Shown in pieces: positions 5,340-55,292 of a DNA stretch of 64,000 nucleotides. The DNA is taken from the NCBI GenBank assembly GCA_964187785.1, contig OZ076411.1:24614001-24678000 (forward strand). Reading direction: 5' to 3'. Numbering within the stretch: the first letter of the stretch is position 1; each line of letters starts with the position of its first letter. The notes under the pieces are model-generated. The model searched no databases, was not told the origin of the DNA, and saw only the letters and a program-made list of their open reading frames with translations. This DNA is from Amphiscolops sp. MND2022 (taxonomy: Eukaryota). The translations under genes and the position numbers were made by a program.

Positions 5340-5355
5340 TCTAGAATAGTTTTTA

Positions 5356-5373
5356 TGGCGCCCCACAAGGGAC
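5356..5373 (+). promoter_or_regulatory. Primer-binding site, tRNA-Lys-like
   Basis: TGGCGCCCCACAAGGGAC matches the canonical Lys PBS TGGCGCCCGAACAGGGAC at 14/18. It lies 16 nt downstream of the LTR. Confidence 0.6.
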
Positions 5374-17600: not shown

Positions 17601-19972
17601 TAAAATATGTTCGGATAATTAGAATTATAGTGCGCCAAACACGGTATTTCCGTGATTTTCTGTTTTAAATTTTCGAATGCTTCCGTGTGTTCCTCGGTCC
17701 AAATCCAATCCATACCCTTCTTTAACAGCTGTCGTAAAACGTCCGTTTGTGCTGAAAGGTTTTCAATGTACTTTGACAGATATTGGATTGCTCCGAGAAA
17801 TGATTTAAGTTCCTTTTCGTTCTCCGGTTTCTTCAAATTTTTAATCGCCATTAATTTGTCCTGTAACGGTCTAATTCCGTTTTGGTCAATTTTATGTCCA
17901 ATCCATTCAATTTCGGTTTTGAACAGCTTCAGTTTGCTTTCGCTCAGTCTATAACCAGCGTTTTCCAATTACGATAGTACGTCGGTTAATTCCTCCAAAT
18001 GTTTTTGTTTGGAGGATTTGTTACGACTATGATGTCGTCTAATCATGCTGGGTGTTTATTTTCCAGTGTTTGGTCAATTTTCTCTTGAAATATCGTCGGG
18101 ATGTCGGTTAGCCCGTAAAAGCTTTTTAAAAATCGGAAATAACCGGTAAAGTTTCCCCCGGTTACTGCGAAGATGCATAGGTCCATTGTTTTTTTTGATA
18201 GTTTAAGTTGACTGTATGCATAATCTAAATCGAACTTCGAAATCCATGTTTCGTCTGCCGGTCCGTCTGCGGTATTTCCGGAGATTCTCGATTTTAATTC
18301 CTCCATATTAGGCATTTGTGCCTTTCTTTTTATTGTTATTTCATTTAATTTTCTTGAGTCCAGTGCGATTTTTACCGACTTATCTTTTTTGATGATGATT
18401 ACCGTAGGGCTTACGAAACAACTTTCGTCAATATTTTCAGCTTTTTCGATGTGGCCCAATTTTTTCAATTTTTCGATTTCTTTACCCACTGCTTAATGTA
18501 AAAGGATAGGATTGGGTCTACCTTTTTGTTGGATCAGTTTTGCGTCATCTTTTAATTGTATATCAACTTCCACGTTTTTTACAGTGTGGTTTGTTGAAAA
18601 TAATTTATGGAACTTACTTTTCAGTGCTGTTATTTCGCGTTCCGAGTTACAGTTGATTTGGTTCGGTTTGTCGGTGATGTGTTTTATTGTTTGGATGTTA
18701 TTGTCCGTGTTCAGTGTAATTCCGAGTTTTCCCATCCAGTCTAATCCGAGTAGTGGGTGTGTTTGTTTAGTTGTTACCAGTAATTCCAGTTGTCTCTCTT
18801 TACCGTCTATTGTTATGTTGGCGGTTGTTTTCCCCTCGAATTTTATTTTGTTGTCGTTCACGTCCCGGTAATCTAAAGTTACCGGCTTCATTGTTGTAAT
18901 ATTGTTGAATTTTGATTTTGGAATTAGAGTTTTTGGTGAGCCTGTATCGACGATGAATTTGATTGGTCGGTTATTAACCGATAACGTTTTAGTATAGAAC
19001 GGTGGTCCGTTCTTGCTTCCATTGCCCAGTGAGTTGATTTTTTGTTGAATTGAGTGTATTTTGTCTGGTGTCCACTCGTCTTTATCTGCGCTATATGCTT
19101 CCTCATCTGCTATATGGTTTATTTTCTTTCCAGACCGGCAGCATTTAGCAAAATGTCCCAATTTACCGCATTTGGCACATTTCTTTCCTTTTGCGGGATA
19201 TTCGTGTTGTTTGGACCCGTTAGGTTCTCCGCACCTATTGCAGTCCAGTCTTCTCGCGGTCTTCGGGTTTCGTTCGGTATGTTCTTTTCCATACTTTAGT
19301 TTTCTTTTTTCCACATGCCTGATTTTTTTTGTCTTCGTCGCTTTCTGGAGATTCATTTAGTTTTTCATGCATGTACTCATGTAATGCCTCTGTGATAGCC
19401 TCCACTGACATGTCGCTTTTTCTAATTTTCTTTTTTACTTCGTAATCGCCTGTGGATTTCCCGATGAGCGATAGGAATTTTGAGGCCAGATGTTCGGCTG
19501 CCGTAATGGTTTCGAACTCGCAGTTTTTCTCCGCCTCCAGTATTTTCTTCCAGACGTCTGCGGTTGTTTCGTTTTCTTCTTTTTTCAAATCGAAAAAGTC
19601 GGCCCTGCTATGTTGTACGTTCCGTTCTGGAGTGAAATGCAATCGAAATAGGCTGTACAGTCTGTGTAACGGTAGAGTGCTGGGTTCTCGTTCTCTCACC
19701 GTTTTTGTCATTTCTGATAGGGCACTTTGTCCAATTGCCCATAGAAACGTGTCTTTAATTTCTAGTTCCAGTTGATCGCGGAATTGTGGCAGGATTTCTT
19801 TTGGGTTTACCCTTTGTGATACGTCGATGTCTTTTGTCATTTTAATATATTGGACAAATTTTCGCCACCACAGATTTGCGCTGGAGCTGTCGTGTTTTTC
19901 TAAGCTGGGAATGGTCAATTTCTGGGTACATGTCCGTTCTCCCGTTCTTGGTGTTGTTTCATTGGGTATCAA
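14585..19972 (-). pseudogene. Fragmented gag-pol polyprotein
   Basis: Gag NLWWRKFVQYIKM (19235-19972), CKKCAKCGKLGHFAKCC knuckle and FIVDTGS protease (18493-19356), RT KIALDSRKLN with A*LDD (18043-18489), RT thumb/RNase H (17100-17968), HKGH...CDGC (16099-17019), integrase MDFIGP / RTDKATAF / GLVERG (15438-16079). Multiple stops and frameshifts. Confidence 0.9.
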
Positions 19973-20100
19973 CTGGCTGCTGGATGATTGATCGGTTGCC
20001 CGGTCAGGCTGTTCCCCCGTTGGAGGGGTGTTGTTCGTATCTTCCGTTCTTTGGTAATTGATGGGCTGATCACGAATGTTTGTGGTAATTGTCAGTTATA

Positions 20101-20118
20101 CTGACACTGACTGCGCCA
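20101..20118 (-). promoter_or_regulatory. Primer-binding site (TGGCGCAGTC, tRNA-Ser-like)
   Basis: The minus strand reads ...TTACAACA|TGGCGCAGTCAGTGTCAG. TGGCGCAGTC matches the tRNA-Ser PBS used by 17.6/297-type elements. Confidence 0.75.
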
Positions 20119-20313
20119 TGTTGTAACTTTATGATACAAAAATTTACTTTCTATCAAGACTGTATTTTATCTCGTAGCTATTCTTACTAAACGAACTTTA
20201 GTATGATAAAGACGATACAGTATAGGCAGGTACTTCAGACTAATTAAATAACAATAAGAATAATAGTGTCTAAAGTATGAAGTTTGTCCTCTAGCTTAAT
20301 CAGCTATGCCACA
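20119..20313 (-). repeat. Single 195-bp LTR
   Basis: Minus strand TGTGGCATAG...TTACAACA directly followed by the PBS. Confidence 0.7.
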
Positions 20314-21256
20314 AACAAAATTTTAAAATACTAGATATTTATTTGAAAAAAAACTGACAACAATTATCGCAACAAAGTTTATAGAACATTTTCAAAGTTT
20401 TTCTATCTCCATTCCATTCTTTAAAACGCCCTTCTATTTTCGAAGACCATAAATTAAATTCTGATAATCTGGGGCTTCAAAAAAGATTTTGATCAACGTG
20501 AAGCGCTTTTTTCTTTCAAAAACGGGAATATTTATCACATAAGGTGTGGAAAGTCGGTCAGTACATGCGAAAAGCAACGACCAGCATAAGTGAGTGAGTC
20601 GACGATGAACCAAAAAAGGGTAAAATTAGAACATCAAAAGCAGGTCGGAGAACATAAGTGTTTTGAGGTGGAAAATGTTCAGCAATCAGTTTGGCGCCTC
20701 CTGTCATTTTCTGACTTTTTGTTACTAATTTTTTCTTTGAACTGTCTGGGCCAGTGGCCTTTGATATTTAATTGATGCCATCAAATGAAAAAGTTCAATG
20801 GAGTGAAAACCGATAGCCGCTCCATTTCATCCTTGTAACCCCAAAGATCACGAAGTGTCGATTAAAGTGAGTTGTGAGTGTAGAGTTCTGACTAAAATGA
20901 AAGTAGAACTCTTAAAAAATGACTAGGGTATACCGTTTGTAAGAAGTAGTTCCTTGAATGGCCCCTTTTATTATGAGCGGACGCCTGTAAAAATCTGCAA
21001 TGTTGATGATCAGTGGTTTTGAACATGATTATATTCGCCAAAATGCTTCTTTCATACAGAAGCCTGAAAAGTTTTGAAAGTAAGTTTGGGAATTCCACAA
21101 CGTTTCTCAGTAGTTCTCAAAAGTTGATTCTGGTTTAAATTGTACTCTATGGTACCAAAAATGCAAATATCACACGCAAAAACTTTGGAAGCGCATTATT
21201 TCTTTGGATATGCATTCGACAGAGAAGTCTTTTGAAAATGAGAATGACAACAGTGT

Positions 21257-36650: not shown

Positions 36651-37440
36651 AAGCAAATTTTTCACTTTTACATTCAATACGACTCCCTTTACTACTTTGG
36701 ATGAATTTTCACTAACCTTGAATGAGTAAAAAACAATGCTGTGCTTGATTTTATTGATTGAAATACGGTTGACTGAGGAAGATGTTTTGGAGCAATTGAT
36801 ACTGGTAGATACCGAACCATGGAATCAATTCAGCGGCAGACTTGACATTTTGAAAAGAGTCTACTTCAATTGATCATGAATTTTTTCAAACAGAGTAGGA
36901 AAGTTTAGTTTCTGAGGAATTATACTCTCGTTTGTTGAAAATAAACTGAAGGACCATGCGCAAAAGCTTATCATTAACGGCAGCAAACAAACTGTCACGG
37001 CATGAAATGTCACCCATGACAGTTCTCAGTATGCATAAACTATGTTGAGTTGTTGAGGAACTCGTTTTGTGCGGACTCTCAGAAAATCAATATGCCGAAA
37101 ATCACTCAATGGAAGGAACTGTGAGTTTTATTTTGTAAGTCCTTCATCAGAATAGAGTTTAAAAACGTAACGAAAATTTTATCTGAAAAAAGTTGTCTTC
37201 GAAAACAACCAAACTGTGCCAAAAAACCAAAATTATAATAAACTTGTTTCGGTCACTTGGACCCGTTTGAGTGAAAAGCCGACAAACAACCACTCTAATT
37301 GTCGGGTTTTGATTATTGAAACGGAGACTGAAAATAACCAATGAAGCAAGTCAGCGCAGGTGTTCCACAAAGTTTCGAGTAGGTCCTTTCCCTTCTTCTG
37401 ATTTTCACCAAGGTCTTTTTCAAAACACTTGAAAATTACC

Positions 37441-39080
37441 TGTCGCAGGCGGCCGCCTGCGATGGCAACCTGTATACCATAGACCACAGTCTGCCAATTG
37501 CCCTACCCGGAACATTACCTTTATAACTACAAGGATAAATAACTTTGAGAACATTATTTCATTTAATATTTGCAACACATGTAAACCAATTTATGTATTT
37601 TATTTGTAATATGATTGATGTTTGACAGCAAGCTATACTGACAGGCAGAAAGGAAACGAGTTCAAATGTTTGCCTGTTAAGTATAGCTAGCATAGCCGCG
37701 CACGGCATATTAGCCAATCATAGCTCATCTTGTTTTATTTGTAGTTGTAGTAATGCATTCACTTATTAATCAGAATGGACCGTCACGGTCACTTGGCCTA
37801 AGCGGACTAATTGCATTTTGTTGCTATACTGAGTTGCTGTTAAATAAATAGAACAAAGCGGATGCTGTCTTAATGGCTGAACGGCCTTACTTGTCCAAAT
37901 GTCGCTAGTGCTACTGCTAGAGAAATAAGGCCCTATGCGGCCAGCGGACTAAATGAGTATTCTCATTTGTTAATATGATGAAATCGATGCTATTATTGAT
38001 ATGTTAATGAAATACGTGTTATGTATTACTGAGTGTTCAACCTCATGTAAACGTTAATATGTAGTGTTACTTCCCCTGTTTAATATGATAATATGGGGTT
38101 AAATGGTTCCTCGCAACAATAGACCGTGTAGGACCGCCATGAATCATTTTGCATGTAAAACTGTTGCTTACATGAATTTGTATATCTGAACATTTTGACC
38201 TATATGCAACGTGGCCCTGTTAGGCGCTTTGATTTAGCCGCCTATATAGGTCCACACTGACGTCATGTAGCTATTTATAGTTCTGATGTATCTATTTTTA
38301 GCCTGTGTGCTATTTTTAGCAGCATGATCATCAGAATTGCGGACGTCATGCTGTCTTGAGTATATATATATGCCCAAGTTAGCCCACAATTTCAATGATT
38401 GATACGATACGGTTATTATTCAGCTATTCTTTTACTGAGAGTACAAGATTCACTGTAAACCCAACAAACATTGTCCACAGGAACAATTTACTTATTTTCT
38501 CCTGGAAAGATATTTTCAATGCCGTCTACAAGAAAACAAAAGGCTAACGCCAGGAGGTCGAGAGAGTTAGACATGTTGTCCGACTACGGTAACATGGACG
38601 TGATGCTAGGCGAAGGTAATTCTAACTCTATAGAAAGAGAGCTAGATAGTCTCATTAATGTCCCTGAAGGGCCGCAAGACTTCAGGTCATTTCCTAAAAG
38701 GGAAAATTCATCTCAAGAAAATGAGATTAGAGATATTGATAACAGAAACGAACCAGTTAGAGAAAGAAGACTAATAGAATCAATTATTATGTTGTCTGGA
38801 GAAATGAATGCTAGAATGTCTCGTGAAATGGAAACAATGATGGATTTAATGCAATCACAAATCAGTAGCGCTATTAGCTCTGCCATAAGTGAAAGGATTA
38901 TTCCTGAGATACAGAACATGGTGGAAAACTTGCCTTTGAGTCAACCTGGCGCCGGACCGTGTATGTCCTCAAATGAGGATGGAATGAGAAATGTATGGAA
39001 AAGCTCAAATACGAAATTAACAAAGAAGGACTCAAGGTCTGCATGCGATCTGAGGGACCATGTGGACCCTGTTCCTTACA
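37441..39080 (+). repeat. 5' LTR (1640 bp), includes the first ~187 codons of gag
   Basis: TGTCGCAGG...GTTCCTTACA. About 11 substitutions and one TA indel (hand count) relative to 52552-54189. Confidence 0.95.
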
Positions 39081-40222
39081 TGGTGACAGGAGCTAACGAA
39101 CCCCAACAGCACATTCCTGAATTCCTCACAGGACGAATTTACTCCCAGCCCGACCTTCAGAGACAAGAATCCGCGCATGATACAACCCTCGACACAACCC
39201 TACCAGTGGCGGAGCCAGTTACAGCCCAACTGTCGCAAGACCCCATCAACCGATTGGCAGATGTCCTGGTAAATCTCCAGAACAAACCACAGTCGATGAC
39301 AATTCGACCAGTCACGACGAACCCTATGACATTTGACGGCAAAACAGAGAAATTCGAATTGTTTGAAGATTTATTTCATACAATGATAAAAATGCAACCC
39401 GCTATGACTGAACAAATGAAAATAAATCATTTTCATTCATTGCTCAGAAAAGGGGCCCTGCAAACCTTCCGAAATATAAACTCTATAAACCGTCAAACAC
39501 TGGAAGACGTACTTGTCATTTTTCGCCGCAAGTACGTTAAACCAGAGTCCCAAGCCACAGCCAAGCACAAGTGGCACAGACTCATTTTCGATCCCAACAC
39601 GATGAAACTACCCGATTTTCTCGAAGAACTCAATCAGGGTGCCGAGAAAGCCTTCGGGGAGAACGCCAAGAGTATGATCGATAGCCTCTTATATGCTAAA
39701 TTACCCCCAAAACTCAAAAGATCGGTGAATATGGCCCGACTGGAAAACGGGACCTACGAGGAGATTGTGGCACATTTAGAAAGAGAACTCGAATTAAACG
39801 CATTAGAAGAATCTGATGACTTGCCAATAGCTACAATGGCTTCATCGTCAGGAAAAGCACGAAATCTACTATCCAATGGCATCGACACCAACAAGAATAA
39901 CAAATGCTCATACTGCAAGGCTGAAGACCATTTCTGGAAGAATTGCCCAAAACTGAAAAAGAAGAAAGAATCAGAGGCCAAGAATGGCAAGAAGCCTCAA
40001 CGCCAAACTTACCCAGAATGTCCCACCTGCAGCAAAACCAATCATCCAGCAGAGAAATGTTGGCGCGGTGCTGGGGCCCACCTTCGTCCAAAACGAAATA
40101 GACAGGACTCCTCAAAAGACACGGAGCCCTCAGAGGACGAAGGCACTCGTACCAAAAACGAAAAACCCACCACATCCACATCAAACCAGTCCAATTTAAA
40201 AAAGACTGATTCAAAAAACTAA
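38519..40222 (+). CDS. gag: Gag polyprotein (567 aa from the first ATG)
   Basis: Intact ORF with capsid-like MTFDGKTEKFELFEDLF region and two CCHC knuckles, CSYCKAEDHFWKNC and CPTCSKTNHPAEKC. Confidence 0.93.
   Translation: MPSTRKQKANARRSRELDMLSDYGNMDVMLGEGNSNSIERELDSLINVPEGPQDFRSFPKRENSSQENEIRDIDNRNEPVRERRLIESIIMLSGEMNARMSREMETMMDLMQSQISSAISSAISERIIPEIQNMVENLPLSQPGAGPCMSSNEDGMRNVWKSSNTKLTKKDSRSACDLRDHVDPVPYMVTGANEPQQHIPEFLTGRIYSQPDLQRQESAHDTTLDTTLPVAEPVTAQLSQDPINRLADVLVNLQNKPQSMTIRPVTTNPMTFDGKTEKFELFEDLFHTMIKMQPAMTEQMKINHFHSLLRKGALQTFRNINSINRQTLEDVLVIFRRKYVKPESQATAKHKWHRLIFDPNTMKLPDFLEELNQGAEKAFGENAKSMIDSLLYAKLPPKLKRSVNMARLENGTYEEIVAHLERELELNALEESDDLPIATMASSSGKARNLLSNGIDTNKNNKCSYCKAEDHFWKNCPKLKKKKESEAKNGKKPQRQTYPECPTCSKTNHPAEKCWRGAGAHLRPKRNRQDSSKDTEPSEDEGTRTKNEKPTTSTSNQSNLKKTDSKN
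39081..39092 (+). promoter_or_regulatory. Primer-binding site, tRNA-Leu-like
   Basis: TGGTGACAGGAG immediately follows the LTR and matches the typical tRNA-Leu PBS TGGTGTCAGGAG at 11/12. It is also coding (M-V-T-G in gag). Confidence 0.75.
40213..40219 (+). promoter_or_regulatory. -1 ribosomal frameshift heptamer A AAA AAC
   Basis: Canonical X XXY YYZ motif in the gag frame directly before the TAA. A -1 slip gives KKLILPRLQICDR, the pol frame, which has no early ATG of its own. Confidence 0.85.
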
Positions 40223-40224
40223 TT

Positions 40225-43200
40225 TTGCCACGACTCCAAATATGTGACCGAATGTCGATACGACAATACGTCATATCAGACCCTGCTAACATTACCTACA
40301 AGCAATCACAAAATGACATCAATGGGACTCCATCGACTGTCTGGCAGCAGCAGATGGAGGAAGCATATACTGAAACTCAATATATCACAAATAGTGACCA
40401 CCCATACTTATACCGACGTAATAGCCACACGAAAGACTCTGAAACCCAATTCCGACCCTTACAAACTGTCGAAGACTATAACCCTCACTACTATGACCCT
40501 GAGTACGGCAGAGACCCGTACTGGGACGATGACATATACGACAAACAGAACTTACAATTCCGAAACGATGATTACCCTCCTACGGACGATGAAGATGATC
40601 CTGAGATTCTAGATAACGCACTGTCCCGGGCACTCATCGAACTGTGGCAACCAAATTTTGAGGCAATCAATGATCAGCCTCATGCAATAGAGACACAGGC
40701 CGCATCCGGCCTCCTAGATGAGACGGCCTTCATACATGTCCTTGTAAACAAAGAGGGAGAACCGGCATACATACCCCTATCAACGAACCTCGGACTTAAA
40801 TACAAAAAACGGATGCTATATTTCCCAATGGACTTTGGGGAATTGACCATAGACGGACTTATCGACACTGGAGCTCTGTCAAGTGCAATACCAGAAGCAG
40901 ACCTCAGGAAAATACGCTTACTAGCGCCTCAATCCATAGTCAAAGAGGGACCTGCGCCAACATTCCAAATCATGGTCGCAAATGGTCAATTAGAAACCCC
41001 AAAGAGCACTGTTGAACTCAAGTTCGAAGTTGGAGACATTGAATTCCACGAAATCTTTATAGTGATGGAAAAACTGACCGGCCCCATTATAGGACTAATG
41101 TTCCTTCAAAGGAATCACACAGTCCTGGACATGCGACAAGGCATCCTTAACTTTCCCTATTTCTCTATGCAACTTAAAACGGCTGACCACAAATATTCAA
41201 ACGTCTTGGAACCTATACTTAACCCAGACGATGTTACAATACCACCCAATGACCGTACTGTAGTAGAGATCAAATCTCAGATATATAATGAAAATTCGGT
41301 CACAGGGGTGTTACAACCCAGTGATCTTCTCCACGAGGAGAGCGACATCACATTTTGTGCCGCAATAGTCACGTTGACTAATGGAAACGTCAGCGTTCAT
41401 ATTAACAATTTCTCAGACCAACCTTACAAGCTCAAAAAGGGACTACACATAGCGAATTTTTCAGTACTAACGCCGGAACAGATGAAACACGTTAAACCAA
41501 TAGACCCGGTGTCCACTTGGCATCTTCTCAACGAAAATGAAGAAGACGCGATCTATTACGTGAGTAGTCTACTTAAGGCTAACAGAAACAATGACCAATA
41601 CGAACAGTACTGGTTTCCAACCCCAGAGAATCCAGGGGACGAAGATTCCCACACTCCCATCCAACGACGAATTCTCCAGGAATTACGCAATCTACAAGAA
41701 GTTGAACAGCTGGACCCTCAAAACGATGAGGAGTCACGACATAAATTTCTTAGCAACTTTGACTGGAAGGACTCGATGCTACAACAGCACGAAATTAAAA
41801 AGATTGAATCGCTCCTAGTTGAATACCATGATATATTCGCCAGACACAGATTTCACATCGGGATGAATGAAAAATTCACGGTCAAACTAACCCCCAAGGA
41901 CGATTCGCCCGCATATAGCCAAAATCTACCCACCCCAGTCAACTTAAAAGAGGACATCCTCGTTGAACTGGCCCTTTTACACAAATATGGCATCATAACT
42001 ACACTGCCATTTTCTAAATATGCCAGTCCCAGATTCGCACAGAAGAAGCCGAATGGGAAACTGAGACTTTTGGTCGACCTAAGGAAAATCAATAACCTTA
42101 TTTCGGACGACTACATAAACAACAATCATCCAGTTAGCACATTGACGGACGCCGCACAGCATATGGCAGGAAAAAAATTATTCTGTAAACTTGACTGTTC
42201 ACAGGCGTACCATTGCCTTCCAATGGCGGACCAAAGGTCCATCGAGATGCTTGCGTTCAACTTTGCGAGCCGCACTTTCGCCTACAGAAGACTTGCCCAG
42301 GGCCTTAGCAGAGCATTATCAGCATTTTCAAGCTTTATGCGAGAAAACCTTGATAAAGTTATTAAAGCAGATCAATGTGCCCAATATGTCGATGACATCG
42401 GCATAGCTGCCAACGACGCCGATCATCTCATCAAAATTTTGAAAGCAACGTTCGAATGTATCAGACCTTAAGCTAACAATGCACAAATGCCATTTTGGGG
42501 CGACAGAAACTGACTTCCTAGGAAGAACAATTACTCCCGAAGGAGTCAAACCACAAAAGGAACAAATAACAACCTTTCTGGAAAAGACCAAATTCCCCAA
42601 ATCCAAAAAAGCCCTGCAGAGATACCTTGGTTTCCTCAACTATTACAGGAACTTTATACCAAGATTATCTGAGAAACTAGCCCCCTTCTTCCAACTCCTC
42701 AAAAAGGACGAGAAGGTACTCGTGACCACGGAGCTAGTACAACAATTCAACGAAATTAATCGAGATCTTGACAAATGTAGCCAATTGGCCCTGAAGCAAC
42801 CTCTCCCAAACAAACAGCTAGTCCTGATGACAGAACCTAGCTTTACAGCGGCAGGCTACGCGATACTTACCGAAGACCACCCAAATCAAAAATTCACTTC
42901 TGTCAAAAAATCGTATGCTCCAATAGCATATGGATCAAAGACGTTCACCCCATCACAACTCAAAATGTCCATATACGCCAAAGAATTCTTAGCTATATAT
43001 TATGCATTCAAAGAATTTGGACACATATTCTGGGGAACACCCAAACCGACCACCATCCTCACGGACAACAAATCGGTAACGGGGTTTTTCCAAACGAAAA
43101 TAATACCTCCAGCGCTATGGAACGCGTGTGACTACGTTTTACAATTCAATTTTATCATTGCCCACATTCCTGGCAAAAACAATACCGCGGCGGACTATTT

Positions 43201-45415
43201 ATCTCGAATGGAAATGGATCCTAAAGAAAAATTAGTCCTGAAAATCCGCGAAGATGTGGAAACACGGCCCATTGAGGTAAATGTCCAATCAGCTGGCGTA
43301 TCAGAAGAGGAGCAAATTTTCTTCACAGAGGATGATGGTGAAACAGAAGCCCAAATTTGGGAACGCAAAAAACAAAGCCGTACCAATCCAACCGACCAGG
43401 AGGTCGTAATCCAGATAGACGCAATAACTGAAAATATAGTTGATGAAATTACAAACTTTACACAAAAGTTGCGCCGAACGAATCAAATACTGCTCGAACA
43501 GTCTAAAGACCCTACTTTGCAACAACTCAAAGCAAAAATACAGAACGAAGATTATTCTGAAGAAATTCTCCAACAGGACATTCGATACAAACACTATCTC
43601 AACAATTTGGACCGAATAGTCCTTAAAGACAAAATAGTCACGCGACAGTACTATGATGAAACTGGACAAATCAAACACCACCAAATTCTCTTACCAAAAC
43701 ACCTATTGAAAGAACTTTTAAACGCATTGCACGGCACCGCGCACAAGCATCCCGGCATATCAAAAATGCTACAGGAAAATCGTCAGAAATACTATTACCC
43801 AGGTATAGCAAAACACGTCAAAAAATGGGTAGAGGGATGTGAAACTTGTGCAAGGGACAAACGTGTTCCAAACAACACAATCACCCCTGAGTTGCTCAAC
43901 TTGCCTGAATGGGACCTCGGACCGGAGGATGCAATGCAAATTGATTTATTACCAAATCTACCAACAAGTGGAGGCTACCAAACCGTGATGACAGCGATAG
44001 GTGTTTTCTCAAGATACCTGTTTGCCTACCCGTTAGTAGAAGCTACCGCTTCAAACACAGCAAAAGTTCTGATTGACATCATGACAAAACATACATATCT
44101 GCCGACAACAATCATCACTGACAAAGGAACTGCTTTCACGTCAAAAAATATCGCAGAAATAACCGAAATTCTCGGAATTACACTAAGATGTGCAACGACT
44201 AAACACCCGCAAACAATCGGCAAACTAGAGAGGACACACGCCTCTTTAAAGACTAATTTGAAGATGGCCTCAGGGGAATATCGCCGGCAATGGCATAAAT
44301 ACCTACCACTGGCAGTACTCAATTACAATACCACCTACCACTCCAGTATTGGTTGTGAGCCAAGTAAGGTCTTCCACGGACGAATTCCCTACAACGTCCT
44401 AGATCATAAACTTGGAAATAATCCTAATAAAGATTTCTTGCCTACTACGGAATTTGCGGAAGAATTACAACAGAGAACACAAATTCTCATTGACAAAACG
44501 AAGCAAAATATCATGCAGTCATACTTGAAATACAAGGAATACTATGACCGGAAGGCCAAGGCAGCTCCCCTTAGTGAACAAGATTTTTGCTTTATTCTGC
44601 AACCCAAAGCAGATAATCAAGGATCAAAAATACCCTTTAGGGAGTACCGCTGGATCGGTCCCTACAGAATTGAAAAGGTATTACCTAATGACAATTACAT
44701 TGTTAGACGGTTAAATACAAATAAAACACAGATATTACACCGGATTCGTCTGAAAAAATTTGTTCCAAACACACCCTTAGAGGACAAATATTCCAAAGAG
44801 AAATTGCAACCAGATGAAGAAATAATCATTCCGCAAGATGATTTATATACCATCTCTTGGGAAGCAGACTTTGATTACCAAGTCTTCGGGCCGAGACGGG
44901 ACGATAACACGAATGAAGAATTACAAATTGACAACGACGCTAGTACTACTACTCGTGATTACGTCATTGATGAAGACGCTGATCACAACGCAAGAAGGCC
45001 GGGAACGGCCACCAGTCGAGACAGCACAATTACGCGAGACGCAAATGACGTCACCGAAGGGAATGAAAATGAAGCAAGACCGAGTACGGCAAATAACCGA
45101 GACGCGCGTACATTGAATGACGATGATGACGTCAATGACAATACTGCAAACGACAAAAGAAACAGTGAAAATGAAAGGCCGAGTACGGCCACAAGCCGAG
45201 ATAACCAAACTTATGGCGACACGCCTACTGAATTGCACAATGAAATTGATGATAGTACTAAACGTTCTCCTAAAAGAGGGGAGGATGATCCCGTGCCCGG
45301 AATATCGGATGATGAAAGAAATGAAAAAATAGAAGGAAATTCAAGCCCTAGAGAAGGGAAATATAATCTTCGACCTAACCCCACCCCCAACTATACTGAC
45401 GAATACAGATACTAG
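40225..45415 (+). pseudogene. pol: Pol (protease, dUTPase-like spacer, RT, RNase H, integrase) broken by one frameshift at ~42470
   Basis: LIDTGA, LRLLVDLRKIN, YVDD, LMTEPSF (expected TDAS), HGTAHKH...CETC, integrase MQIDLL / ITDKGTAF / GKLERTH. Split into ORFs 40225-42471 and 42479-45415, apparently by a small deletion in ECIR-[KAG]-LKLTMHKC. Confidence 0.93.
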
Positions 45416-46750
45416 TCAGAAATGTTAAATTATGTCCCTATTTATTTTACTGCCCAAGAAGGCATGTTCTTTACTGGGACTACTCTGACTTTTGACTCAA
45501 AAGAAACTAACTATATAAATACAGAGACAAGAAACAGAACTCAAATTTACAAATAAAAAGTCTACAATGGCAAATGTACAATATGTAGATTTAGTCTTTA
45601 GAGCTACCTTCTTTTGGATTTTCTTCGGCCTTTGAAGTTTCAGTGGGAATTATACTTCCAAAGAAAGCGGGCTTCTGAGAACTCCCAGATTCACGAACAA
45701 CTTTATGGCCTGCTGTGGATGAAACTGAAGAGCAACGTGAAGGGCCGGCAATTACCTTGACAGGAGTAGGCTTGAGGCCTTTAAAAGTCGTCATTAAACT
45801 CTTCTGAAAGGCTGAACGCCCAAAAGCATCCACGTGCGTCCAGGGATCCCCTGCGAACTGACCAGAACTAAACTGACTATCCATTTCGCGAAATTTGGCA
45901 ATGGAACTCTCGGAGGTGCAGTAGCTGACGGACTGAGAACAATTGGCCAAATAAGACAGAGCCGGTAAGAGCATATCTGTGAAACGGCATTTGGGCTTGG
46001 ACGTATCCACTTCATGGAATTTAATAGCTGGAAGTTCAGTACCACTCTCAGTAAGGCAGAGGCAACTAAGCCGAAATAAGTGAAACAAACTTTTGCGACT
46101 GCGTAAGGCAGGAAGGGCAACGAGAAAACCGACCATATCTTTCATTTGGCCGGGCACGTCCTTAAGCTGAGGGAAATTAGCTCGAAAGTGATCCACGAAT
46201 TCCATGTATTCGTCTCGATAATCAGCCTCTGAAGAACGCTGTACCCATCCGCGAAGGGCAAAGGTCTGGAAAAGGGCTCCAAAACAGAACGTCACTTGCT
46301 CCATTGACAGGGAAACCAGAGTGTGGGGATCAAAGCAAGCCAAGCCGTGGACAATGTCAGCTGTAAGATGGACGTCACGAAGTATTGTCTCGAGCAAAAA
46401 GACGAAGTACCCTCTGGCATTCGTCGCAAAATTATCCCTTTCGGCAACTAGCAGACAACTAAATTCATTGGCACTAATGTTAGGGTCACTGCGAGACTGA
46501 CGGATTTTGGCCTTGCAAACGAGGTCGATGTCGGTGACAAGCTTCAGCCGGTGCAGGAAATCTCGGCAAGATAATAACTTTAAATCATCAGGGCACAAAT
46601 AAAGCATTCCAGTCCAATCCATGTCGCCAGGGATACACTTAGGAAGGACGGCCCGTGAACAAAGTTTTCGTAGGAAGCGACAAAATTGTCCGAAAGTGAA
46701 GAAGGATGCATCGGCTTGCCCAGACAGACTGCGTTCGAAGCACTTGACGT

Positions 46751-46814
46751 CTAAACACCACATATATAGCGGGGAATCAGAGGAAAAGAGAAATGACCAA
46801 AAGGTCATACTTAC
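46751..46814 (-). other. Spliceosomal intron 3 (64 nt)
   Basis: GTAAGT...pyrimidine-rich...GTTTAG, phase 1. Joins EIFGLIVRD-Y to VKCFERSL in the 409-aa ORF frame. Confidence 0.7.
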
Positions 46815-47203
46815 AATCACGGACTATGAGACCGAAGATCTCCAACTTGATAGTGAAGTATTCATCCATCAGAATCATCCACTCAAGACTTTGTGGCTGA
46901 AAAGGTCTATGGATAAATCCTCGGAGTGAAAGTTCAAATAACGCTTAGGGAACTACTATTCTTGAAACCATAAACGGAATTTTGACCAGGAGGTGGAAGA
47001 CAAAACCATAATGTTCACGCTCAACATTAGCTGTAAAAGCCTAATCAACTGAACAATAGGAAACTCACCCTGCCTCGAACTCCCTGTCCGGATTGGGAAG
47101 GTGCATCTTTAGTCATGAAGTCACGAATGTTTGGCCACTGTGCAACAATTTCCCCACATAAGGCTGGAATGGTTTGCAGATTCAGATCACATGTAGTAAT
47201 GGC

Positions 47204-47317
47204 CTGAAAAATACACAATCATTGCCTGTATGCAACTCTGACGTTACCCATCCCTCACTCCTTCACTTGTACAACCAGTTGTTCAGTGCTTAGAAGATAA
47301 GATGAGAAGAAACTAAC
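47204..47317 (-). other. Spliceosomal intron 2 (114 nt)
   Basis: GTTAGT...TATTTTTCAG, contains two in-frame TGA. Joins CPNLST to AITTCDLNLQ. Confidence 0.65.
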
Positions 47318-47435
47318 CGTCGAGAGATTGGGGCAGTCTAACATCCAAGTTTGGCTAAGACCGTTGACGAGGAAAACGGTTAAGTACTTGACTTGAGAGA
47401 AGATATCGATCTTTCCAAAGAAACATTCGTACTTC

Positions 47436-49571
47436 TGATGCATGAGTTTTGGCAATGAAAGCACCTCGAATCTGAAGGGATATTGCAGGGAGAACTTGAA
47501 AAGGTCACTTCGGTCAAGGGTTTGCAACACGGCGGAAGGACAGCCGGACACGCTGACTAAGTTAGGCCCGACGGAGACGAAGGACAGCAATCGTGAAATG
47601 GAACCGAAGAAGTTCCCAGGGTACGAGGAAGCCAGTGGGTGTCTGCACAGCTCTATCCGCTGGATGACATCCTCCCGCCAGAAACGTACGGCCATGTAAC
47701 AGAAGCCTTTGCGGTTCGTAAACTCCAGAGAGTAAATGCCTTCTGTGGTGATCTGTCCTGCTATATCTTCAGTGCAACGTAAGAAGACGTGATGGAAGAT
47801 TTTCTGGAAACAAAATTAATATTGTTAGCACGGAACTTCCAAAAGGGTCACTCTGGCCAGGGAGTTAATGTAATACTTACAGTGAGGTTGTCAGATCTCC
47901 AATCGAAATCGGAGAAGAACCCTTGGTGGCTAGTGAAGGTTCCGAATTGTGTCCACAGATTTCTCAGTAGGGCTAAATCACCTCCGTGTGGGGCAAGGAG
48001 CCCGATCAAGGAAATTTGGGTAGTCATTCGGAGTTCATCTGGACTGGATGTTCCTCCCATTGTTGCAACGTAATCGTCGTAAAATGGAAACTTGTCTCCA
48101 ATATCGACGAGGGGGGCATCAATAAAAAAACTCTTCTCTTTCTCCAGTTGTAGAGGAGTAAGTATTTAATCGTCCTTCCCTCGGACTTGGTGGGTCACCT
48201 TGCCAGTTGTAGCATCTATTTCTCTGAGGTGTTCATACCTCCATTTTTGGTCACGTCGCAGGTGGCCTTGAGTCTTGTAATGGCGAAGGTTCTCTCGGGC
48301 GCCTTTAGAATATATTGATATGTTTGTTTTACATATCTGGCAATAGAATTTGTAACGATTATGTAAGGGATCGAGGGGTCCTGAGACAAAAAGCCTTGTC
48401 CATTGGATGCCTTTAAAGTAGGCATCCTTCATGACTTTGCCTGGTTTGCAAAGCATTCTCCTCCGCTTACGAGGAGGACTAGAATCTGCCCCAACGGGGG
48501 CTTGATGCATGAGTTTTGGCAATGAAAGCACCTCGAATCTGAAGGGATATTGCAGGGAGAACTTGAAAAGGTCACTTCGGTCAAGGGTTTGCAACACGGC
48601 GGAAGGACAGCCGGACACGCTGACTAAGTTAGGCCCGACGGAGACGAAGGACAGCAATCGTGAAATGGAACCGAAGAAGTTCCCAGGGTACGAGGAAGCC
48701 AGTGGGTGTCTGCACAGCTCTATCCGCTGGATGACATCCTCCCGCCAGAAACGTACGGCCATGTAACAGAAGCCTTTGCGGTTCGTAAACTCCAGAGAGT
48801 AAATGCCTTCTGTGGTGATCTGTCCTGCTATATCTTCAGTGCAACGTAAGAAGACGTGATGGAAGATTTTCTGGAAACAAAATTAATATTGTTAGCACGG
48901 AACTTCCAAAAGGGTCACTCTGGCCAGGGAGTTAATGTAATACTTACAGTGAGGTTGTCAGATCTCCAATCGAAATCGGAGAAGAACCCTTGGTGGCTAG
49001 TGAAGGTTCCGAATTGTGTCCACAGATTTCTCAGTAGGGCTAAATCACCTCCGTGTGGGGCAAGGAGCCCGATCAAGGAAATTTGGGTAGTCATTCGGAG
49101 TTCATCTGGACTGGATGTTCCTCCCATTGTTGCAACGTAATCGTCGTAAAATGGAAACTTGTCTCCAATATCGACGAGGGGGGCATCAATAAAAAAACTC
49201 TTCTCTTTCTCCAGTTGTAGAGGAGTAAGTATTTAATCGTCCTTCCCTCGGACTTGGTGGGTCACCTTGCCAGTTGTAGCATCTATTTCTCTGAGGTGTT
49301 CATACCTCCATTTTTGGTCACGTCGCAGGTGGCCTTGAGTCTTGTAATGGCGAAGGATCTCTCGGGCGCCTTTAGAATATATTGATATGTTTGTTTTACA
49401 TATCTGGCAATAGAATTTGTAACGATTATGTAAGGGATCGAGGGGTCCTGAGACAAAAAGCCTTGTCCATTGGATGCCTTTAAAGTAGGCATCCTTCATG
49501 ACTTTGCCTGGTTTGCAAAGCATTCTCCTCCGCTTACGAGGAGGACTAGAATCTGCCCCAACGGGGGCTTG
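47436..49571. repeat. 1067-bp tandem duplication inside the antisense gene (47436-48502 / 48503-49569)
   Basis: Duplicate ORFs offset by exactly 1067 (47442/48509, 47789/48856, 48166/49233). TG microhomology. At least one substitution (ARENLRH vs AREILRH). Confidence 0.95.
48871..48947 (-). other. Spliceosomal intron 1 (77 nt; duplicate at 47804-47880)
   Basis: GTAAGT...GCTAACA(branch)...TTTTGTTTCCAG, phase 0/0. Joins ...SDNLT to KIFHHVFLRC...YMAVRFW in frame. Confidence 0.8.
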
Positions 49572-51803
49572 TGCCTGCGAAAGAGAAGCTAAAGGACGGT
49601 AATCACCACTGCTGTAGCTGCTGCCTGAACAAGGGGTCAGTATCCTGGCTGGATCATGTTGATCTACCGCCATGTCGAGAGTCTTGGAAGCGGAAATGAT
49701 AGGTGGGCAGCCTTCGGACCCAGTCTCGATGTTCCTCATGTCCTCATCAGTGTCCATTGCCCCGCTGGTGTAGCCGTCACTTTCGATTCCCGTGCTCTCA
49801 CCTCCAGAGCTGGACTCGTACCCGGGGCCGGGAGTGGCAGACCTGCGAGGAATATTTCGCGAGGTACGCTTGTTCAGAGGGATCCCCTCAGTTAACTTTA
49901 TCAGTAGCGATTTCATCATGTGGAATGACGACAGCACTGACTCATCAGCTATGGTTCTCAGCACGCCATGAACCTGACTTTCACTAAAGGCAACAGTTGA
50001 ATGACCGGCTGGCAGCTCGACAGGCACGTTCTTTGTGAAGAACTTACGGATAACTTCTCTCCCGGTTGGTGATAGGTTTCGTTCAGTCGAAAGCATCTTG
50101 TCCCGATAGGCAGCTTGTTCAGCATCACTATTCCTTGAAGACTGCTGCAAATCCTCGTCAAGGCTTGTGAATAAGTCAGGATCAAATGAGAAAGTGCCTA
50201 ATTTAGTGGTAGGCAGATCGACTCCAGAACTGTCGTACAACTCTCCCGGGTCACTGGTATCAGAGTGCAAAGCCCTACACTCAAGAGTTCTTGTTCGGGA
50301 TTCTTCACTATTGCCCGGGACCGGCTGTGGTGCTTTGGTAATTTCTAAAGTTATCGACTCAGAGACTTTAGGAGCTCCATGTGTGTTTTCCTCAGCCTCA
50401 GGAACTTTGGGAGCCGCGTGTGGATCTTCTTCAAGGACGGTGTCAAGGGGTGTTGTTGATGCACCTGGAAACTGTGAGACAACTTTCTCAATATAGGCGC
50501 TTACACTCTCGTCAGTTGAGTTGGACGCCTGGGATTCGGGTCGCACTTCTTTTTCTGGCACATTTTGGAATTGGGCCGGTTCATGTTCTTGTCCCTGACC
50601 AATGGGAGCAATGGTAGGATTGGTGGATTCTGGCAACCTCTCTTCGTTAGACATCTCTAAATGGAAAGAGACAAATTTTAGCGGGTAGCTTCCTGAATAT
50701 GAATCCATGAGACCGCTTTACAAATCTTCTAGAAGTAAAATTGAAACATACGGCAAAACGCTTATGCTCTTTGAAACAAATGGACAGGAAGTATTACGAG
50801 CGTGAACAGGTCCTGATCAAACCTATTTCCGTTCAAAAAGAAAAGACCAGATAGCTAACCTGACATTGCAAAAGATTTGAATCGGATGTAGTCCAGAAAG
50901 ACAATTGACAGGAAGATGGAGAAGGGAGACTGATGCTGTTACGAAGAATAAGGCACTCGGACCCCAAGTAGGAAATCCAACTTCAAAGAGAAGTCGTCTG
51001 CTGTCCGAGTATGGCCAAAGAGTAGAAGGCTGATAGTCCAATAGTGAACTTGATAATAATAAGTAACGGACCAGAAGACTAACAACTATACTAAATAGAC
51101 AATGTATAAATACGGAAGTGGTTAGAATTTGAATGGATAAAGTAACAATTGAATGAATGACGAAGATTGCTGAAAGAAGAGTTGGAGTTTGTGGCAAACT
51201 GGAATTGATGTCAAACAATTATACAATTATAGGTGTCATTTTGTGGATGGAACCTGCCAGAGAAATCCACAAAGTTATCCTCAAAATCTTATTTTACCAC
51301 GGATCTATTATTTTACAGTTATTTCATTATTTTATTTATTTCCTTATTTGGAATATTATTATTTCGTCCGCCATTTCGGAATGCGGATAGCAATGGCGAT
51401 TCTTATTGGCTATCGCGGCGATGAGCCGCGCGTGGCCTCAAATCTTGACTATTGGCTCTTGAAAGTCTCAAGTGGATGTTGAGAGCTGATAAACACTTAA
51501 AGGTGCCATTGATGTCTTCAAGCCGCATTAGGCAGACTGCTGAAGTAACGATGTAAACAAAGCGGCACGTTGGGGTCATCAAAGGTTGTTTGGAAGGAGT
51601 TATCGATATGAATGTTAACAGGAAGGCAAAACCCCGGGAAAGGAGTCACGGGTTTCGAAGTAAAAATCTTAAACGAAATCAAGAAAAGAAATTGTCATTC
51701 TCTCTCTTAAAGCCTACAAGTGCAGTTGGTCTTACAACTGAAATTCATAAAGTTGACTTCAATTTTCTACAAAATTGCGAAAAAACTGATAAAAACGCGA
51801 TAC

Positions 51804-52637
51804 ATGGCTGATAGATACCCGCAAGACTTTTGTGGCGCTGCGCCCCGAAGGATACAGCTAGTATATCTGTCCAGTGATGAAGAAGAGGAAATGGACGCAT
51901 TTAGTACTACATCCGTAATGGACCTCCAACTATCGTCAGAAGATGAGGAATACGACGATGAGATCTTGATGATGGCACAATGCGTCGAAATGCAACTGTC
52001 AACGCCTATACCTGTCCCTGGGTCTTCTACACCGAAAACGGACCGCCCTAACCTATTGAACAGGCCGTCTGAAAGCAAAAAGCCTAATCTGACACACAGC
52101 CCTAGTCCCGTCCCAGATCAGTCTTTCTTTTCATTGGGAAGGGGAAAGGGCCCGATAAGGCGTGATGATCGCATAAGGAATAACCACCCGATAAAGTTAT
52201 GCAGCGGACTAATCCCTCTGGTGGACACGCCAATGTCACCTCCCCCGGAAGAAAGAGGGCACTGTAGTTCTTTTTTCGACAACTATGCCGAGCGGCCAGA
52301 GTCACAACAATCTCTCGACGGAATTACAAATCATTTCCAAGGAATGGGACTCAGTGGGTCGGGGGCATTAGTGAACTACTCAGACTGTGTAATATGCGGG
52401 AAATCGACAATGCAAATTCAGCAAGAAGCAGTTGCGGACTACCTGGTCAAGACGGCTATTCCCGGAGAAACAGCACTACAAGTCGAAGCGCGTAAGAGAG
52501 CCTTCATTGAAGGGATGCAGGTTGGCACATTCTTACTTCTCCCAGGGGGAGTGTCGCAGGCGGCCGCCTGCGATGGCAACCTCTATACCATAGACCACAG
52601 TCTGCCAATTGCCCTACCCGGAACATTACCTTTATAA
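51804..52637 (+). CDS. Accessory sense ORF (277 aa from ATG), acidic N-terminus, Pro/Ser-rich, CxxC, unknown function
   Basis: Open frame 51720-52637 with ATG at 51804. Reads across the PPT and stops 86 nt inside the 3' LTR. No signal peptide or transmembrane segment seen. Confidence 0.7.
   Translation: MADRYPQDFCGAAPRRIQLVYLSSDEEEEMDAFSTTSVMDLQLSSEDEEYDDEILMMAQCVEMQLSTPIPVPGSSTPKTDRPNLLNRPSESKKPNLTHSPSPVPDQSFFSLGRGKGPIRRDDRIRNNHPIKLCSGLIPLVDTPMSPPPEERGHCSSFFDNYAERPESQQSLDGITNHFQGMGLSGSGALVNYSDCVICGKSTMQIQQEAVADYLVKTAIPGETALQVEARKRAFIEGMQVGTFLLLPGGVSQAAACDGNLYTIDHSLPIALPGTLPL
52544..52551 (+). promoter_or_regulatory. Polypurine tract
   Basis: AGGGGGAG immediately precedes the TGTCGCAGG start of the 3' LTR. 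Confidence 0.85.
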
Positions 52638-54189
52638 CTACAAGGATAAATAACTTTGAGAACATTATTTCATTTAATATTTGCAACACATGTAAACCAA
52701 TTTATGTATTTTATTTGTAATATGATTGATGTTTGACAGCAAGCTATACTGACAGGCAGAAAGGAAACGAGTTCAAATGTTTGCCTGTTAAGTATAGCTA
52801 GCATAGCCGCGCACGGCATATTAGCCAATCATAGCTCATCTTGTTTTATTTGTAGTTGTAGTAATGCATTCACTTATTAATCAGAATGGACCGTCACGGT
52901 CACTTGGCCTAAGCTGACTAATTGCATTTTGTTGCTATACTGAGTTGCTGTTAAATAAATAGAACAAAGCGGATGCTGTCTTAATGGCTGAACGGCCTTA
53001 CTTGTCCAAATGTCGCTAGTGCTACTGCTAGAGAAATAAGGCCCTATGCGGCCAGCGGACTAAATGAGTATTCTCATTTGTTAATATGATGAAATCGATG
53101 CTATTATTGATATGTTAATGAAATACGTGTTATGTATTACTGAGTGTTCAACCTCATGTAAACGTTAATATGTAGTGTTACTTCCCCTGTTTAATATGAT
53201 AATATGGGGTTAAATGGTTCCTCGCGACAATAGACCGTGTAGGACCGCCATGAATCATTTTGCATGTAAAACTGTTGCTTACATGAATTTGTATATCTGA
53301 ACATTTTGACCTATATGCAACGTGGCCCTGTTAGGCGCTTTGATTTAGCCGCCTATATAGGTCCACGCTGACGTCATGTAGCTATTTATAGTTCTGATGT
53401 ATCTACTTTTAGCCTGTGTGCTATTTTTAGCAGCATGATCATCAGAATTGTGGACGTCATGCTGTCTTGAGTATATATATGCCCAAGTTAGCCCACAATT
53501 TCAATGATTGATACGATACGGTTATTATTCAGTTATTCTTTTACTGAGAGTACAAGATTCACTGTAAACCCAACAAACATTGTCCACAGGAACAATTTAC
53601 TTATTTTCTCCTGGAAAGATATTTTCAATGCCGTCTACAAGAAAACAAAAGGCTAAAGCCAGGAGGTCGAGAGAGTTAGACATGTTTTCCGACTACGGTA
53701 ACATGGACGTGATGCTAGGCGAAGGTAATTCTAACTCTATAGAAAGAGAGCTAGATAGTCTCATTAATGTCCCTGAAGGGCCGCAAGACTTCAGGTCATT
53801 TCCTAACAGGGAAAATTCATCTCAAGAAAATGAGATTAGAGATATTGATAACAGAAACGAACCAGTTAGAGAAAGAAGACTAATAGAATCAATTAATATG
53901 TTGTCTGGAGAAATGAATGCTAGAATGTCTCGTGAAATGGAAACAATGATGGATTTAATGCAATCACAAATCAGTAGCGCTATTAGCTCTGCCATAAGTG
54001 AAAGGATTATTCCTGAGATACAGAACATGGTGGAAAACTTGCCTTTGAGTCAACCTGGCGCCGGACCGTGTATGTCCTCAAATGAGGATGGAATGAGAAA
54101 TGTATGGAAAAGCTCAAATACGAAATTAACAAAGAAGGACTCAAGGTCTGCATGCGATCTGAGGGACCATGTGGACCCTGTTCCTTACA
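52552..54189 (+). repeat. 3' LTR (1638 bp) carrying a second copy of the gag N-terminus
   Basis: Direct repeat of 37441-39080, followed by the TSD TTACC. ORF 53628-54215 is gag residues 1-187 running on into the flank (PVPY-ITEATRRR*). Confidence 0.95.
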
Positions 54190-55292
54190 TTACCGAAGCA
54201 ACACGAAGACGCTAATGGGTTTTGTATTGAAGTTCGTAGCACTGTGTGCACAATGCGACTTATGAGAACTCGCAATTATTCACTGATGTTTGAGTAAAAA
54301 ATATGCTTCAGCAAAGTCGTTTTTCAAACATCGACACCACAGCCACGGGGAAGCAAATGAAACAAAAATCAGAAAAACTAAATACAGCTTGTAGGAAAAA
54401 TTGTGGCTAATTTTTTTTCAAGAAAACTGTTGGACTCTCGGTATCTACAAATGAAGAAAGAAGTTTGTAAAGAGAATCTTTTGAAGCATACTTGTTGGAA
54501 CGTTTACCGTCTATTTTTGCGAGGGATAAAAAGTATTTCAAGTTTCCAGAAACTGGTTGATTTAATTACATATGACATACAAGTTTATGACAAGAAACTC
54601 TTTTCTTCATATACATGATCTGTACAAAAGTGAAAATCATGACGAAACGCGCTAATTTTTGCCTACAACTGGGTCATTTCGCTCGATTTTCACTTCAAAA
54701 TGGAGGCTAATCAAAGAAAAACAGTCGATATGATGATACGAAAAACAGCTTCTGAAATAGCATTTTGTGTGCCACTTTTGAACTGTTTGTGAAAAGTTTC
54801 AATACCAAAAGATATGGAATATTAGACAAGTAATTATTTTTGGAAATAAGTGTATTGGATAAGTAGATGTTTCTGAAACTTTTCACTAATCCGTCGAAAT
54901 TCTTTCCGAATATCAAGACATTCTAGAGAAAGAACGACTGAACTTTTGTCTAGTAGAAATCTCAAATCATTTAAACAGATGGTGAAAGAAGAAAGCATGA
55001 AATATACGATACTAATTTAATACTTTTGAGCTATTGGTAGTATTACTATTAGCAAAATTTCGAAATCTTCTACTCGCAGCCTGCCATATAATTCTGTAGA
55101 ATTTTGAGCTTGTCCGAAACATGTAAAAACATTTTCCCAAAAATCAAGCTATATTTTAAATAACCCTAAAATGGAATGTGAAGTAGATTATGTGAGTGAA
55201 ACCTCCTCCCCACTGATGTGATGAAACTCAACCATCCTTTAAATAGCGAAAACTAGAATGTTGATGTGATGATTGTGTCGCAATAATTAGTC

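Follow-up and report, generated by a model that had tools for sequence, protein, structure and literature searches.

Conserved antisense open reading frames (ORFs) between pol and the 3' long terminal repeat (LTR) are described in the plant Retand/Tat elements, in maize Grande, in rice RIRE2 and in the fungal element Boty, and that of Grande is reported to have its own promoter (PMC7264820, PMC11963269). In animals, the Ty3/Gypsy-like elements Juno, Vesta and TelKA of bdelloid rotifers carry varied non-env ORF3s after pol and a dUTPase between protease (PR) and reverse transcriptase (RT), a domain position that is rare in retrotransposons (PMC5408684). Cer1 of C. elegans encodes CERV, an accessory nuclear protein needed for expression of the element's genomic RNA, which is phosphorylation-dependent and has no known domains (PMC10309623). 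The 3' part of deltaretroviruses contains a minus-strand coding gene, HBZ or APH-2, for which a spliced form exists and whose product is a nuclear regulator (PMC11963269). The VANC proteins of the Arabidopsis VANDAL elements are transposon-encoded accessory proteins acting on the element's own chromatin (PMC5735166, PMC10398659), and a review covers the accessory ORFs of giant elements (PMC6431247). The present work concerns a Ty3/Gypsy (Metaviridae) LTR retrotransposon at positions 37441-54189 of a 64,000-nucleotide (nt) stretch of contig OZ076411.1 from Amphiscolops sp. MND2022 (assembly GCA_964187785.1), hereafter the window, whose sequence contains no N. Between pol and the 3' LTR this element carries a 7-kb cassette of two divergent genes, a spliced antisense gene and a sense gene (ORF3).

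In the window copy gag is followed by pol (to 45415), the cassette region and the 3' LTR. The antisense gene (45591..50708, minus strand) and ORF3 (51804..52637, plus strand) start at ATGs 1,095 nt apart, on either side of a spacer (50709..51803), and the final 86 nt of ORF3 are the first 86 nt of the 3' LTR. A preliminary description of this DNA had assigned 45416-52551 to the element from its LTR pair and target site duplication (TSD), and had seen in this region two head-to-head genes about 1.1 kb apart. Both points are correct: the LTRs are present with TTACC on both sides, and the two genes lie as described. The proposed limit at 52551 needs a correction, since the sense ORF crosses the LTR border. 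The size of 16.7 kb is right for the window copy only: 1,067 nt of the 7-kb pol-to-LTR region are an internal tandem duplication, whose units differ by 1 nt. As this duplication is absent from the other full-length copies examined (7/7), the canonical element measures about 15.7 kb.

The same cassette, with the same order and strands, is present in eight further full-length loci (L002, L003, L004, L005, L007, L008, L010 and L011), fetched from other contigs of a single ENA assembly, ERZ25074608. The window sequence matches part of one contig of this long-read, metagenome-style assembly exactly (ERZ25074608:ctg182930_109x_l); coverage of the contigs concerned is about 100x. In each full-length locus the layout is pol, the antisense gene converging on pol, the spacer, ORF3 and the LTR. 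Two further assemblies contain fragments with these genes (ERZ1742291 with L006 and L012, ERZ27264081 with L009). Protein identity across copies and fragments ranges from about 30 to 98%. L003, L007 and L008 display clean LTR pairs and 5-bp TSDs, and L002 has an LTR pair as well; in these four copies the two LTRs are 98.7-100% identical, those of L008 without a difference over 1,725 nt. The lineage is recently active and autonomous, and its genome regularly comprises four genes (gag, pol, the antisense gene and ORF3) instead of two. In L005 the end repeat (3737-7000 and 17854-21241) exceeds 3.2 kb and covers ORF3 and part of the spacer. This is less suggestive of a simple LTR pair than of a recombinant or of two tandem elements with an LTR in common.

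Cluster searches, in which the homologues are ORFs from ENA assemblies without annotation, returned 39 clusters with about 530 member sequences for exon 3, the last antisense ORF (32-98% identity), and 81 clusters with about 500 member sequences for ORF3 (34-97% identity). Exon 1 of a relative gave 180 clusters or more, with about 1,900 members in the 120 that were listed, and a profile search of 1.84 billion representatives gave 829 (50% identity level). The window exon-1 product, looked up as an exact sequence, matched only the window's own contig.

To estimate selection we used the ratio of non-synonymous to synonymous divergence (dN/dS). Between the window copy and L008 it is 0.108 for gag, 0.033 for PR-RT, 0.26 for antisense exon 1 and 0.118 for antisense exon 3. 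For ORF3 it is 0.145 against L010 and 0.06 against L011; most pairs between subfamilies are saturated, and closer copies were fetched for the ORF3 values. Where synonymous divergence (dS) is saturated, protein similarity is retained. Both accessory genes are under purifying selection about as strong as gag, and their values (0.06-0.26) are not near 1. The preliminary description had proposed a stably inherited accessory module. With the same order and orientation in every full-length copy, its presence in other assemblies, this range of dN/dS and no transposon boundaries of its own, the comparisons support this proposal, and the cassette is a stably inherited part of the element lineage. Its segments do not share one history: between the window and L008, dS spans a tenfold range by segment (0.08 to 0.96), and ORF3, only about two-thirds identical between the two copies, is far more diverged than the adjoining antisense gene. 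Such segment-dependent dS within one pair indicates that the subfamilies are recombinant mosaics.

The features that define the aORF family, i.e. the additional ORFs of LTR retrotransposons, are found here: the extra ORFs are in the other copies examined, and their conservation is comparable to that of gag (0.06-0.26 vs 0.108). As with the plant and fungal antisense aORFs, the region from pol to the 3' LTR is long, antisense ORFs are present in most copies with a conservation near that of gag and pol, and nuclear or DNA-binding regulators are suspected. In contrast to these aORFs, the antisense gene has three conserved introns, encodes about 1,150 amino acids (aa) and is paired with a sense ORF3 that overlaps the polypurine tract (PPT) and the LTR. 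Unlike the Retand/Tat type, it has no TRP28 (Transposase_28, PF04195) match on any exon and no SMC domain, and the element has no tandem motif arrays, only scattered two-copy repeats. With Juno, Vesta and TelKA the element shares an animal Ty3/Gypsy-like organization, a dUTPase between PR and RT and a non-env ORF3 after pol; the rotifer ORF3s are, however, sense genes of recognisable types (env-like, GDSL esterase, DEDDy exonuclease), none of which matches, and no antisense spliced gene is described there (PMC5408684).

The likeness to CERV is that of an accessory protein of an animal Ty3/Gypsy element, but CERV is made from a five-exon sense mRNA overlapping the gag-pol frames (PMC10309623), whereas ORF3 is a separate single 3' ORF, and no sequence similarity was found between the two. 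The antisense gene resembles HBZ and APH-2 as a minus-strand coding gene in the 3' part, known here from sequence. The deltaretroviral genes start in the 3' LTR and their products are of bZIP type, whereas here the start is predicted within the internal spacer and the product, with its single finger, has five times their size. This lineage is set apart by an antisense gene that has several introns and is paired with a sense ORF overlapping the PPT and LTR, by the conserved spacer that the two share, and by two protein families without relatives. Both cassette proteins are new families, with no relative in Pfam, in PDB or among the named database entries searched.

The antisense gene consists of four coding exons separated by three GT-AG introns (77, 421 and 64 nt in the window copy). 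Subfamilies share these three introns even at a protein identity of only 30-55%. The first donor, GTAAGT, is invariant in the 6 loci compared (6/6); elsewhere the splice sites follow the canonical GT...AG pattern and have pyrimidine tracts. An 82-nt exon, 2b, stands between the second exon and the last one; without it the frames join poorly. A three-exon model, frame-compatible but with poor acceptors, was dropped for the four-exon model after exon 2b was found. The joined four-exon ORFs encode 1,169 aa in L002, 1,182 aa in L004 and 1,151 aa in L007. Across subfamilies the exons are alignable over 84-100% of their length and the introns over 22-46%, with one exception. A retroelement can keep introns only if they lie on the strand opposite to its genomic RNA. 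Those of the antisense gene come through retrotransposition because the genomic RNA strand does not carry them as introns, and their conservation is therefore sequence evidence of a separately transcribed, spliced antisense mRNA. The splicing that the preliminary description gave for this gene agrees with the four-exon model, with the qualification that the gene is interrupted in the window copy.

The interruptions in this copy are one in-frame stop in exon 1 and the 1,067-nt tandem duplication; exons 2, 2b and 3 are intact. The exon-1 ORF of L008 terminates within two codons of the same point, while those of L010, L011 and the other subfamilies read on. L008 has in addition one internal deletion, by which the tail of exon 1 and exon 2 are lost. 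Intact copies of every gene are present among the relatives.

The antisense protein (about 1,150 aa) has an acidic, Ser-rich N-terminus, a module confidently modelled as two helices (pLDDT, the predicted local distance difference test, about 90), a basic run, a Cys2His2 finger and a mainly helical remainder of about 700 aa. The basic run, just upstream of the finger, is nuclear-localisation-like. The spacing of the finger is C-x2-C-x16-H-x5-H and its four ligands are invariant in 25/25 sequences. It is modelled as beta-beta-alpha, i.e. a beta-hairpin and a helix, with a pLDDT of 60-70, and it matches the Pfam family zf-C2H2_ZN292 at 17-19 bits, under the 27-bit cut-off. The AlphaFold2 model of exon 3 is all-helical (pLDDT 61); that of exon 1 has a pLDDT of 56. 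The "DNA-binding protein" of the preliminary description holds at the level of motifs only, in that one invariant Cys2His2 finger stands beside a basic run.

The spacer (50709..51803, 1,095 nt) is a candidate internal bidirectional promoter. It contains blocks that are identical in 6/6 subfamilies despite saturated synonymous sites in the coding sequences, for example GGACAGGAAGT at 50782-50792, TATTGG at 51404-51409, ATAAACACT at 51489-51497 and, near 50725-50735, a palindromic site with a GGAA core. From their sequence, these blocks appear to resemble the ETS, CCAAT-box and forkhead sites of bidirectional promoters.

ORF3 is intact in the window copy and encodes 277 aa. The protein is acidic (37 Asp+Glu vs 22 Lys+Arg) and has no hydrophobic segment, its maximum 19-residue hydropathy being 1.15. 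The alignment of 23 homologues contains 24 invariant columns. Ser23, Ser24 and Asp25, invariant in 23/23, follow a hydrophobic stretch in which Ile20 is nearly invariant, and precede a run of Glu; His128, His177, Cys195, Cys198 and a block near the C-terminus are also invariant. A SUMO-interaction pattern covers residues 19-31 of the window ORF3 and, at the level of the motif, 36 of 57 full-length homologues match the strict pattern. We take the Ser-Ser-Asp region to be a SUMO-interaction-like motif with a casein-kinase-type acidic serine cluster. The earlier designation as a "SIM-type protein", i.e. one with a SUMO-interaction motif, can be retained for the motif only: invariant Ser-Ser-Asp after a hydrophobic stretch, then acidic residues. 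The conserved C-terminal block is encoded by the PPT and the first 86 nt of the 3' LTR. Outside of this overlap ORF3 is under purifying selection (dN/dS 0.147 over the first 244 codons, against L010). Hydropathy, Pfam and PDB revealed no env feature in ORF3, whether a signal peptide, a transmembrane segment or a fusion-glycoprotein domain. It had been stated that neither cassette gene looks like env, and the lack of a hydrophobic segment and of any family match agrees with this.

The 5' LTR (37441..39080, plus strand) and the 3' LTR (52552..54189, plus strand) have TG...CA ends and are 99.3% identical; their alignment of 1,640 nt contains 11 mismatches and a single 2-nt indel. The identical 5 nt of the TSD, TTACC, stand immediately outside both of them (37436..37440 and 54190..54194). 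The primer-binding site (39081..39098, plus strand) starts with TGG immediately 3' of the 5' LTR and is near-identical in all relatives. The PPT (52541..52551, plus strand) is a purine run abutting the 3' LTR, within the coding sequence of ORF3, and is retained in all relatives. Positions 3-22 of each LTR (37443..37462 and 52554-52573) form a perfect 20-nt palindrome, which reads the same as its reverse complement. The other subfamilies largely retain the 8-bp arms, and L009, which comes from another assembly and whose ORF3 has only about 37% protein identity, has the same 25 nt at the start of the LTR. The palindrome, directly 3' of the PPT, also encodes the most invariant peptide of ORF3. 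An integrase or priming signal is one possible role for the palindrome; a protein-binding site is another.

A TATA-like run is present in the 5' LTR at 38361-38367. The sole AATAAA of the LTR (37843 / 52954) lies about 520 nt upstream of this run, i.e. in U3. In the 3' LTR it is found about 320 nt past the stop of ORF3, where a short ORF3 mRNA, and not the genomic RNA, might use it.

The gag gene (38519..40222, plus strand; 567 aa, intact) starts 562 nt into the 5' LTR, which holds its first 187 codons, and 158 nt downstream of the TATA-like run. It encodes two CCHC knuckles and gives a weak match to DUF1759 in Pfam. In L002, L003, L007 and L008 gag likewise starts within the LTR. Because of this start, the N-terminus of gag appears as an open frame of about 190 aa in every 3' LTR and solo LTR of all subfamilies (38519-39080 and 53628-54215 in the window). 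Immediately upstream of the gag stop is the slippery heptamer A_AAA_AAC (40213..40219, plus strand), a site for -1 frameshifting into pol; with its context it is conserved in 4 subfamilies (the window copy, L003, L007 and L008).

The pol frame (40210..45415, plus strand) is -1 relative to gag and open from 40210, 13 nt ahead of the gag stop. It encodes PR (DTGA), a dUTPase-like domain, RT (YVDD), RNase H (RH) and integrase (IN; HHCC, core and GPY), followed by a C-terminal extension. Pfam positions and motifs give the order PR-RT-RH-IN, with IN after RT. The best solved relative is the Ty3 Gag-Pol 7q5b (E 4e-33), the next being a foamy-virus IN (E 3e-21). Domain order, motifs and this best relative identify the element as Ty3/Gypsy rather than Copia, BEL or a retrovirus. 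In the window copy pol has one frameshift and is split into ORFs of 748 and 978 aa that lie in different frames; L008 has a single ORF of 1,524 aa. The dUTPase-like domain (window about 41200-41470) is over the Pfam cut-off in L003 and slightly under it here; it is also noted in the pol of L008. About 250 residues without recognisable domain follow the GPY module of IN (44660-45415).

A second, degraded Ty3/Gypsy-like pol is found elsewhere in the window (15438-19972, minus strand), with IN, RT and PR distributed over several ORFs. It belongs to an unrelated lineage (26% identity in RNase H), the region has a strong AT skew, and no cassette homologues were found there. The ORFs flanking the element have no Pfam domain, and tRNA and Rfam scans of the window and of the fetched loci gave no matches.

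Our best explanation of the whole is a four-gene lineage with a self-regulating cassette, a tentative one whose chances we put somewhat short of even. In it, the spacer would be an internal bidirectional promoter driving both genes, and both products would be nuclear regulators of the element itself. The finger protein would recognise nucleic acid of the element, for which the 20-nt palindrome at the start of each LTR is a candidate target. Through its SUMO-interaction-like motif ORF3 would couple to SUMO-dependent chromatin machinery, keeping new copies transcribed or steering where they act. The cassette products may also be able to work in trans, since copies without an intact antisense gene have still inserted recently. 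This functional part (internal bidirectional promoter, two nuclear self-regulators, SUMO-binding adaptor and trans action) we hold to be possible on its sequence signatures, with a probability that is rather low. A sharper form of it is doubtful: an anti-silencing pair, in which the finger protein would recognise element DNA, e.g. the LTR palindrome, and its SUMO-binding partner would disarm or redirect SUMO-dependent heterochromatin formation. The preliminary description had drawn an analogy with VANC. It survives as a concept only: VANDALs belong to the DNA transposon class, there is no homology, and VANC targets arrays of short repeated motifs in non-coding DNA, whereas no such arrays are present here.

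Several results weigh against a self-regulating cassette. Nearly all the data come from one assembly. A single finger is a weak ground for sequence-specific binding, and motifs of the SUMO-interaction-like kind, being short, are a common sight in acidic disordered proteins. It is at the PPT and the LTR terminus that ORF3 is most conserved, and synonymous divergence is lower in the ORF3/LTR overlap than in the rest of ORF3; part of the ORF3 conservation is therefore a cis-acting constraint on nucleotides. The full antisense protein is not required in cis, because L008, with 100% identical LTRs, lacks the exon-1 tail and exon 2, and the antisense gene of the window copy (99.3%) is interrupted. 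In Pfam the exons, including those of intact relatives, match no family beyond the sub-threshold finger matches, and exons 1 and 3 have no match in sequence and profile searches of solved structures. Their models, of low to medium confidence, gave no significant Foldseek match in PDB or among viral models. ORF3 likewise has no Pfam match, and none among solved structures by sequence or profile search.

The main rival explanation is a control similar to that of complex retroviruses, in which ORF3 would be a Rev- or CERV-like export factor for unspliced genomic RNA and the finger protein would activate or repress the LTR or an internal promoter, with no special role for SUMO. The position of ORF3 is that of retroviral and Cer1 accessory genes, CERV providing a precedent in an animal Ty3/Gypsy element (PMC10309623). 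The protein, of small size and mostly disorder-like, has proline-directed Ser/Thr sites and a conserved Arg-rich stretch. In 6/6 subfamilies the ORF3 ATG is preceded, at a distance of about 90 nt, by a pyrimidine tract and then AG, as expected for a spliced subgenomic mRNA; however, the 5' region yielded no conserved splice donor to match. Nor does ORF3 display similarity to known export factors, and such control leaves the invariant Ser-Ser-Asp after the hydrophobic stretch unaccounted for. We consider this explanation a realistic one whose probability is nevertheless well under half.

The origin of the antisense gene is a distinct question. It could be an ancient captured gene, derived from a BED-finger/hAT transposase or from a host zinc-finger gene, that is now unrecognisable. 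The aromatic residues upstream of the finger and its spacing are in favor of such a capture, and the best local fold likeness of the finger is to ZBED3 chains (49 columns, rmsd, i.e. root-mean-square deviation, of 2.6-4.0 and template modelling score to target of 0.5-0.6). These matches are not significant, with E values of 4-5 and probabilities of 0.2-0.3. Moreover, no Pfam match to zf-BED, hAT dimerisation or RNase-H-like domains was obtained at E up to 5, and the all-helical exon 3 matches nothing. This origin seems improbable to us.

Still less credit can be given to a cassette that restrains copy number, whether its products limit the element, like the self-encoded inhibitor of some yeast elements, or serve the host after domestication of many copies. 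Antisense transcription over 5 kb would give double-stranded RNA with the genomic RNA, and purifying selection alone cannot separate activation from restraint. But the lineage is very abundant and recently active, with LTR identities of 98.7-100% in five copies, and the genes reside within mobile copies, not at fixed host loci. Lastly, an accidental cargo confined to the window copy, either a one-off transduction of a host gene or a nested transposon, might be suggested by the unusually long pol-to-LTR distance and by a GC content differing from that of pol, but it is extremely improbable and excluded by the fetched copies: the cassette is in every full-length copy examined and in other assemblies, no inverted terminal repeats or TSDs of its own bound it, dN/dS is well below 1, and ORF3 overlaps the element's own PPT and LTR.

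The aORFs of LTR retrotransposons are known mostly from plants, and this lineage is an unusually clean case. It offers hundreds to thousands of young copies for comparative tests, and those with a partial cassette hint at trans action. If ORF3 is an export factor, the lineage would be a second animal Ty3/Gypsy example after Cer1. If SUMO-linked regulation is true, the lineage would illustrate how a central silencing pathway is countered by a retroelement; and should the two proteins form an anti-silencing pair, plant VANC would have an animal-type counterpart in a retroelement, made up of two protein families not seen before.

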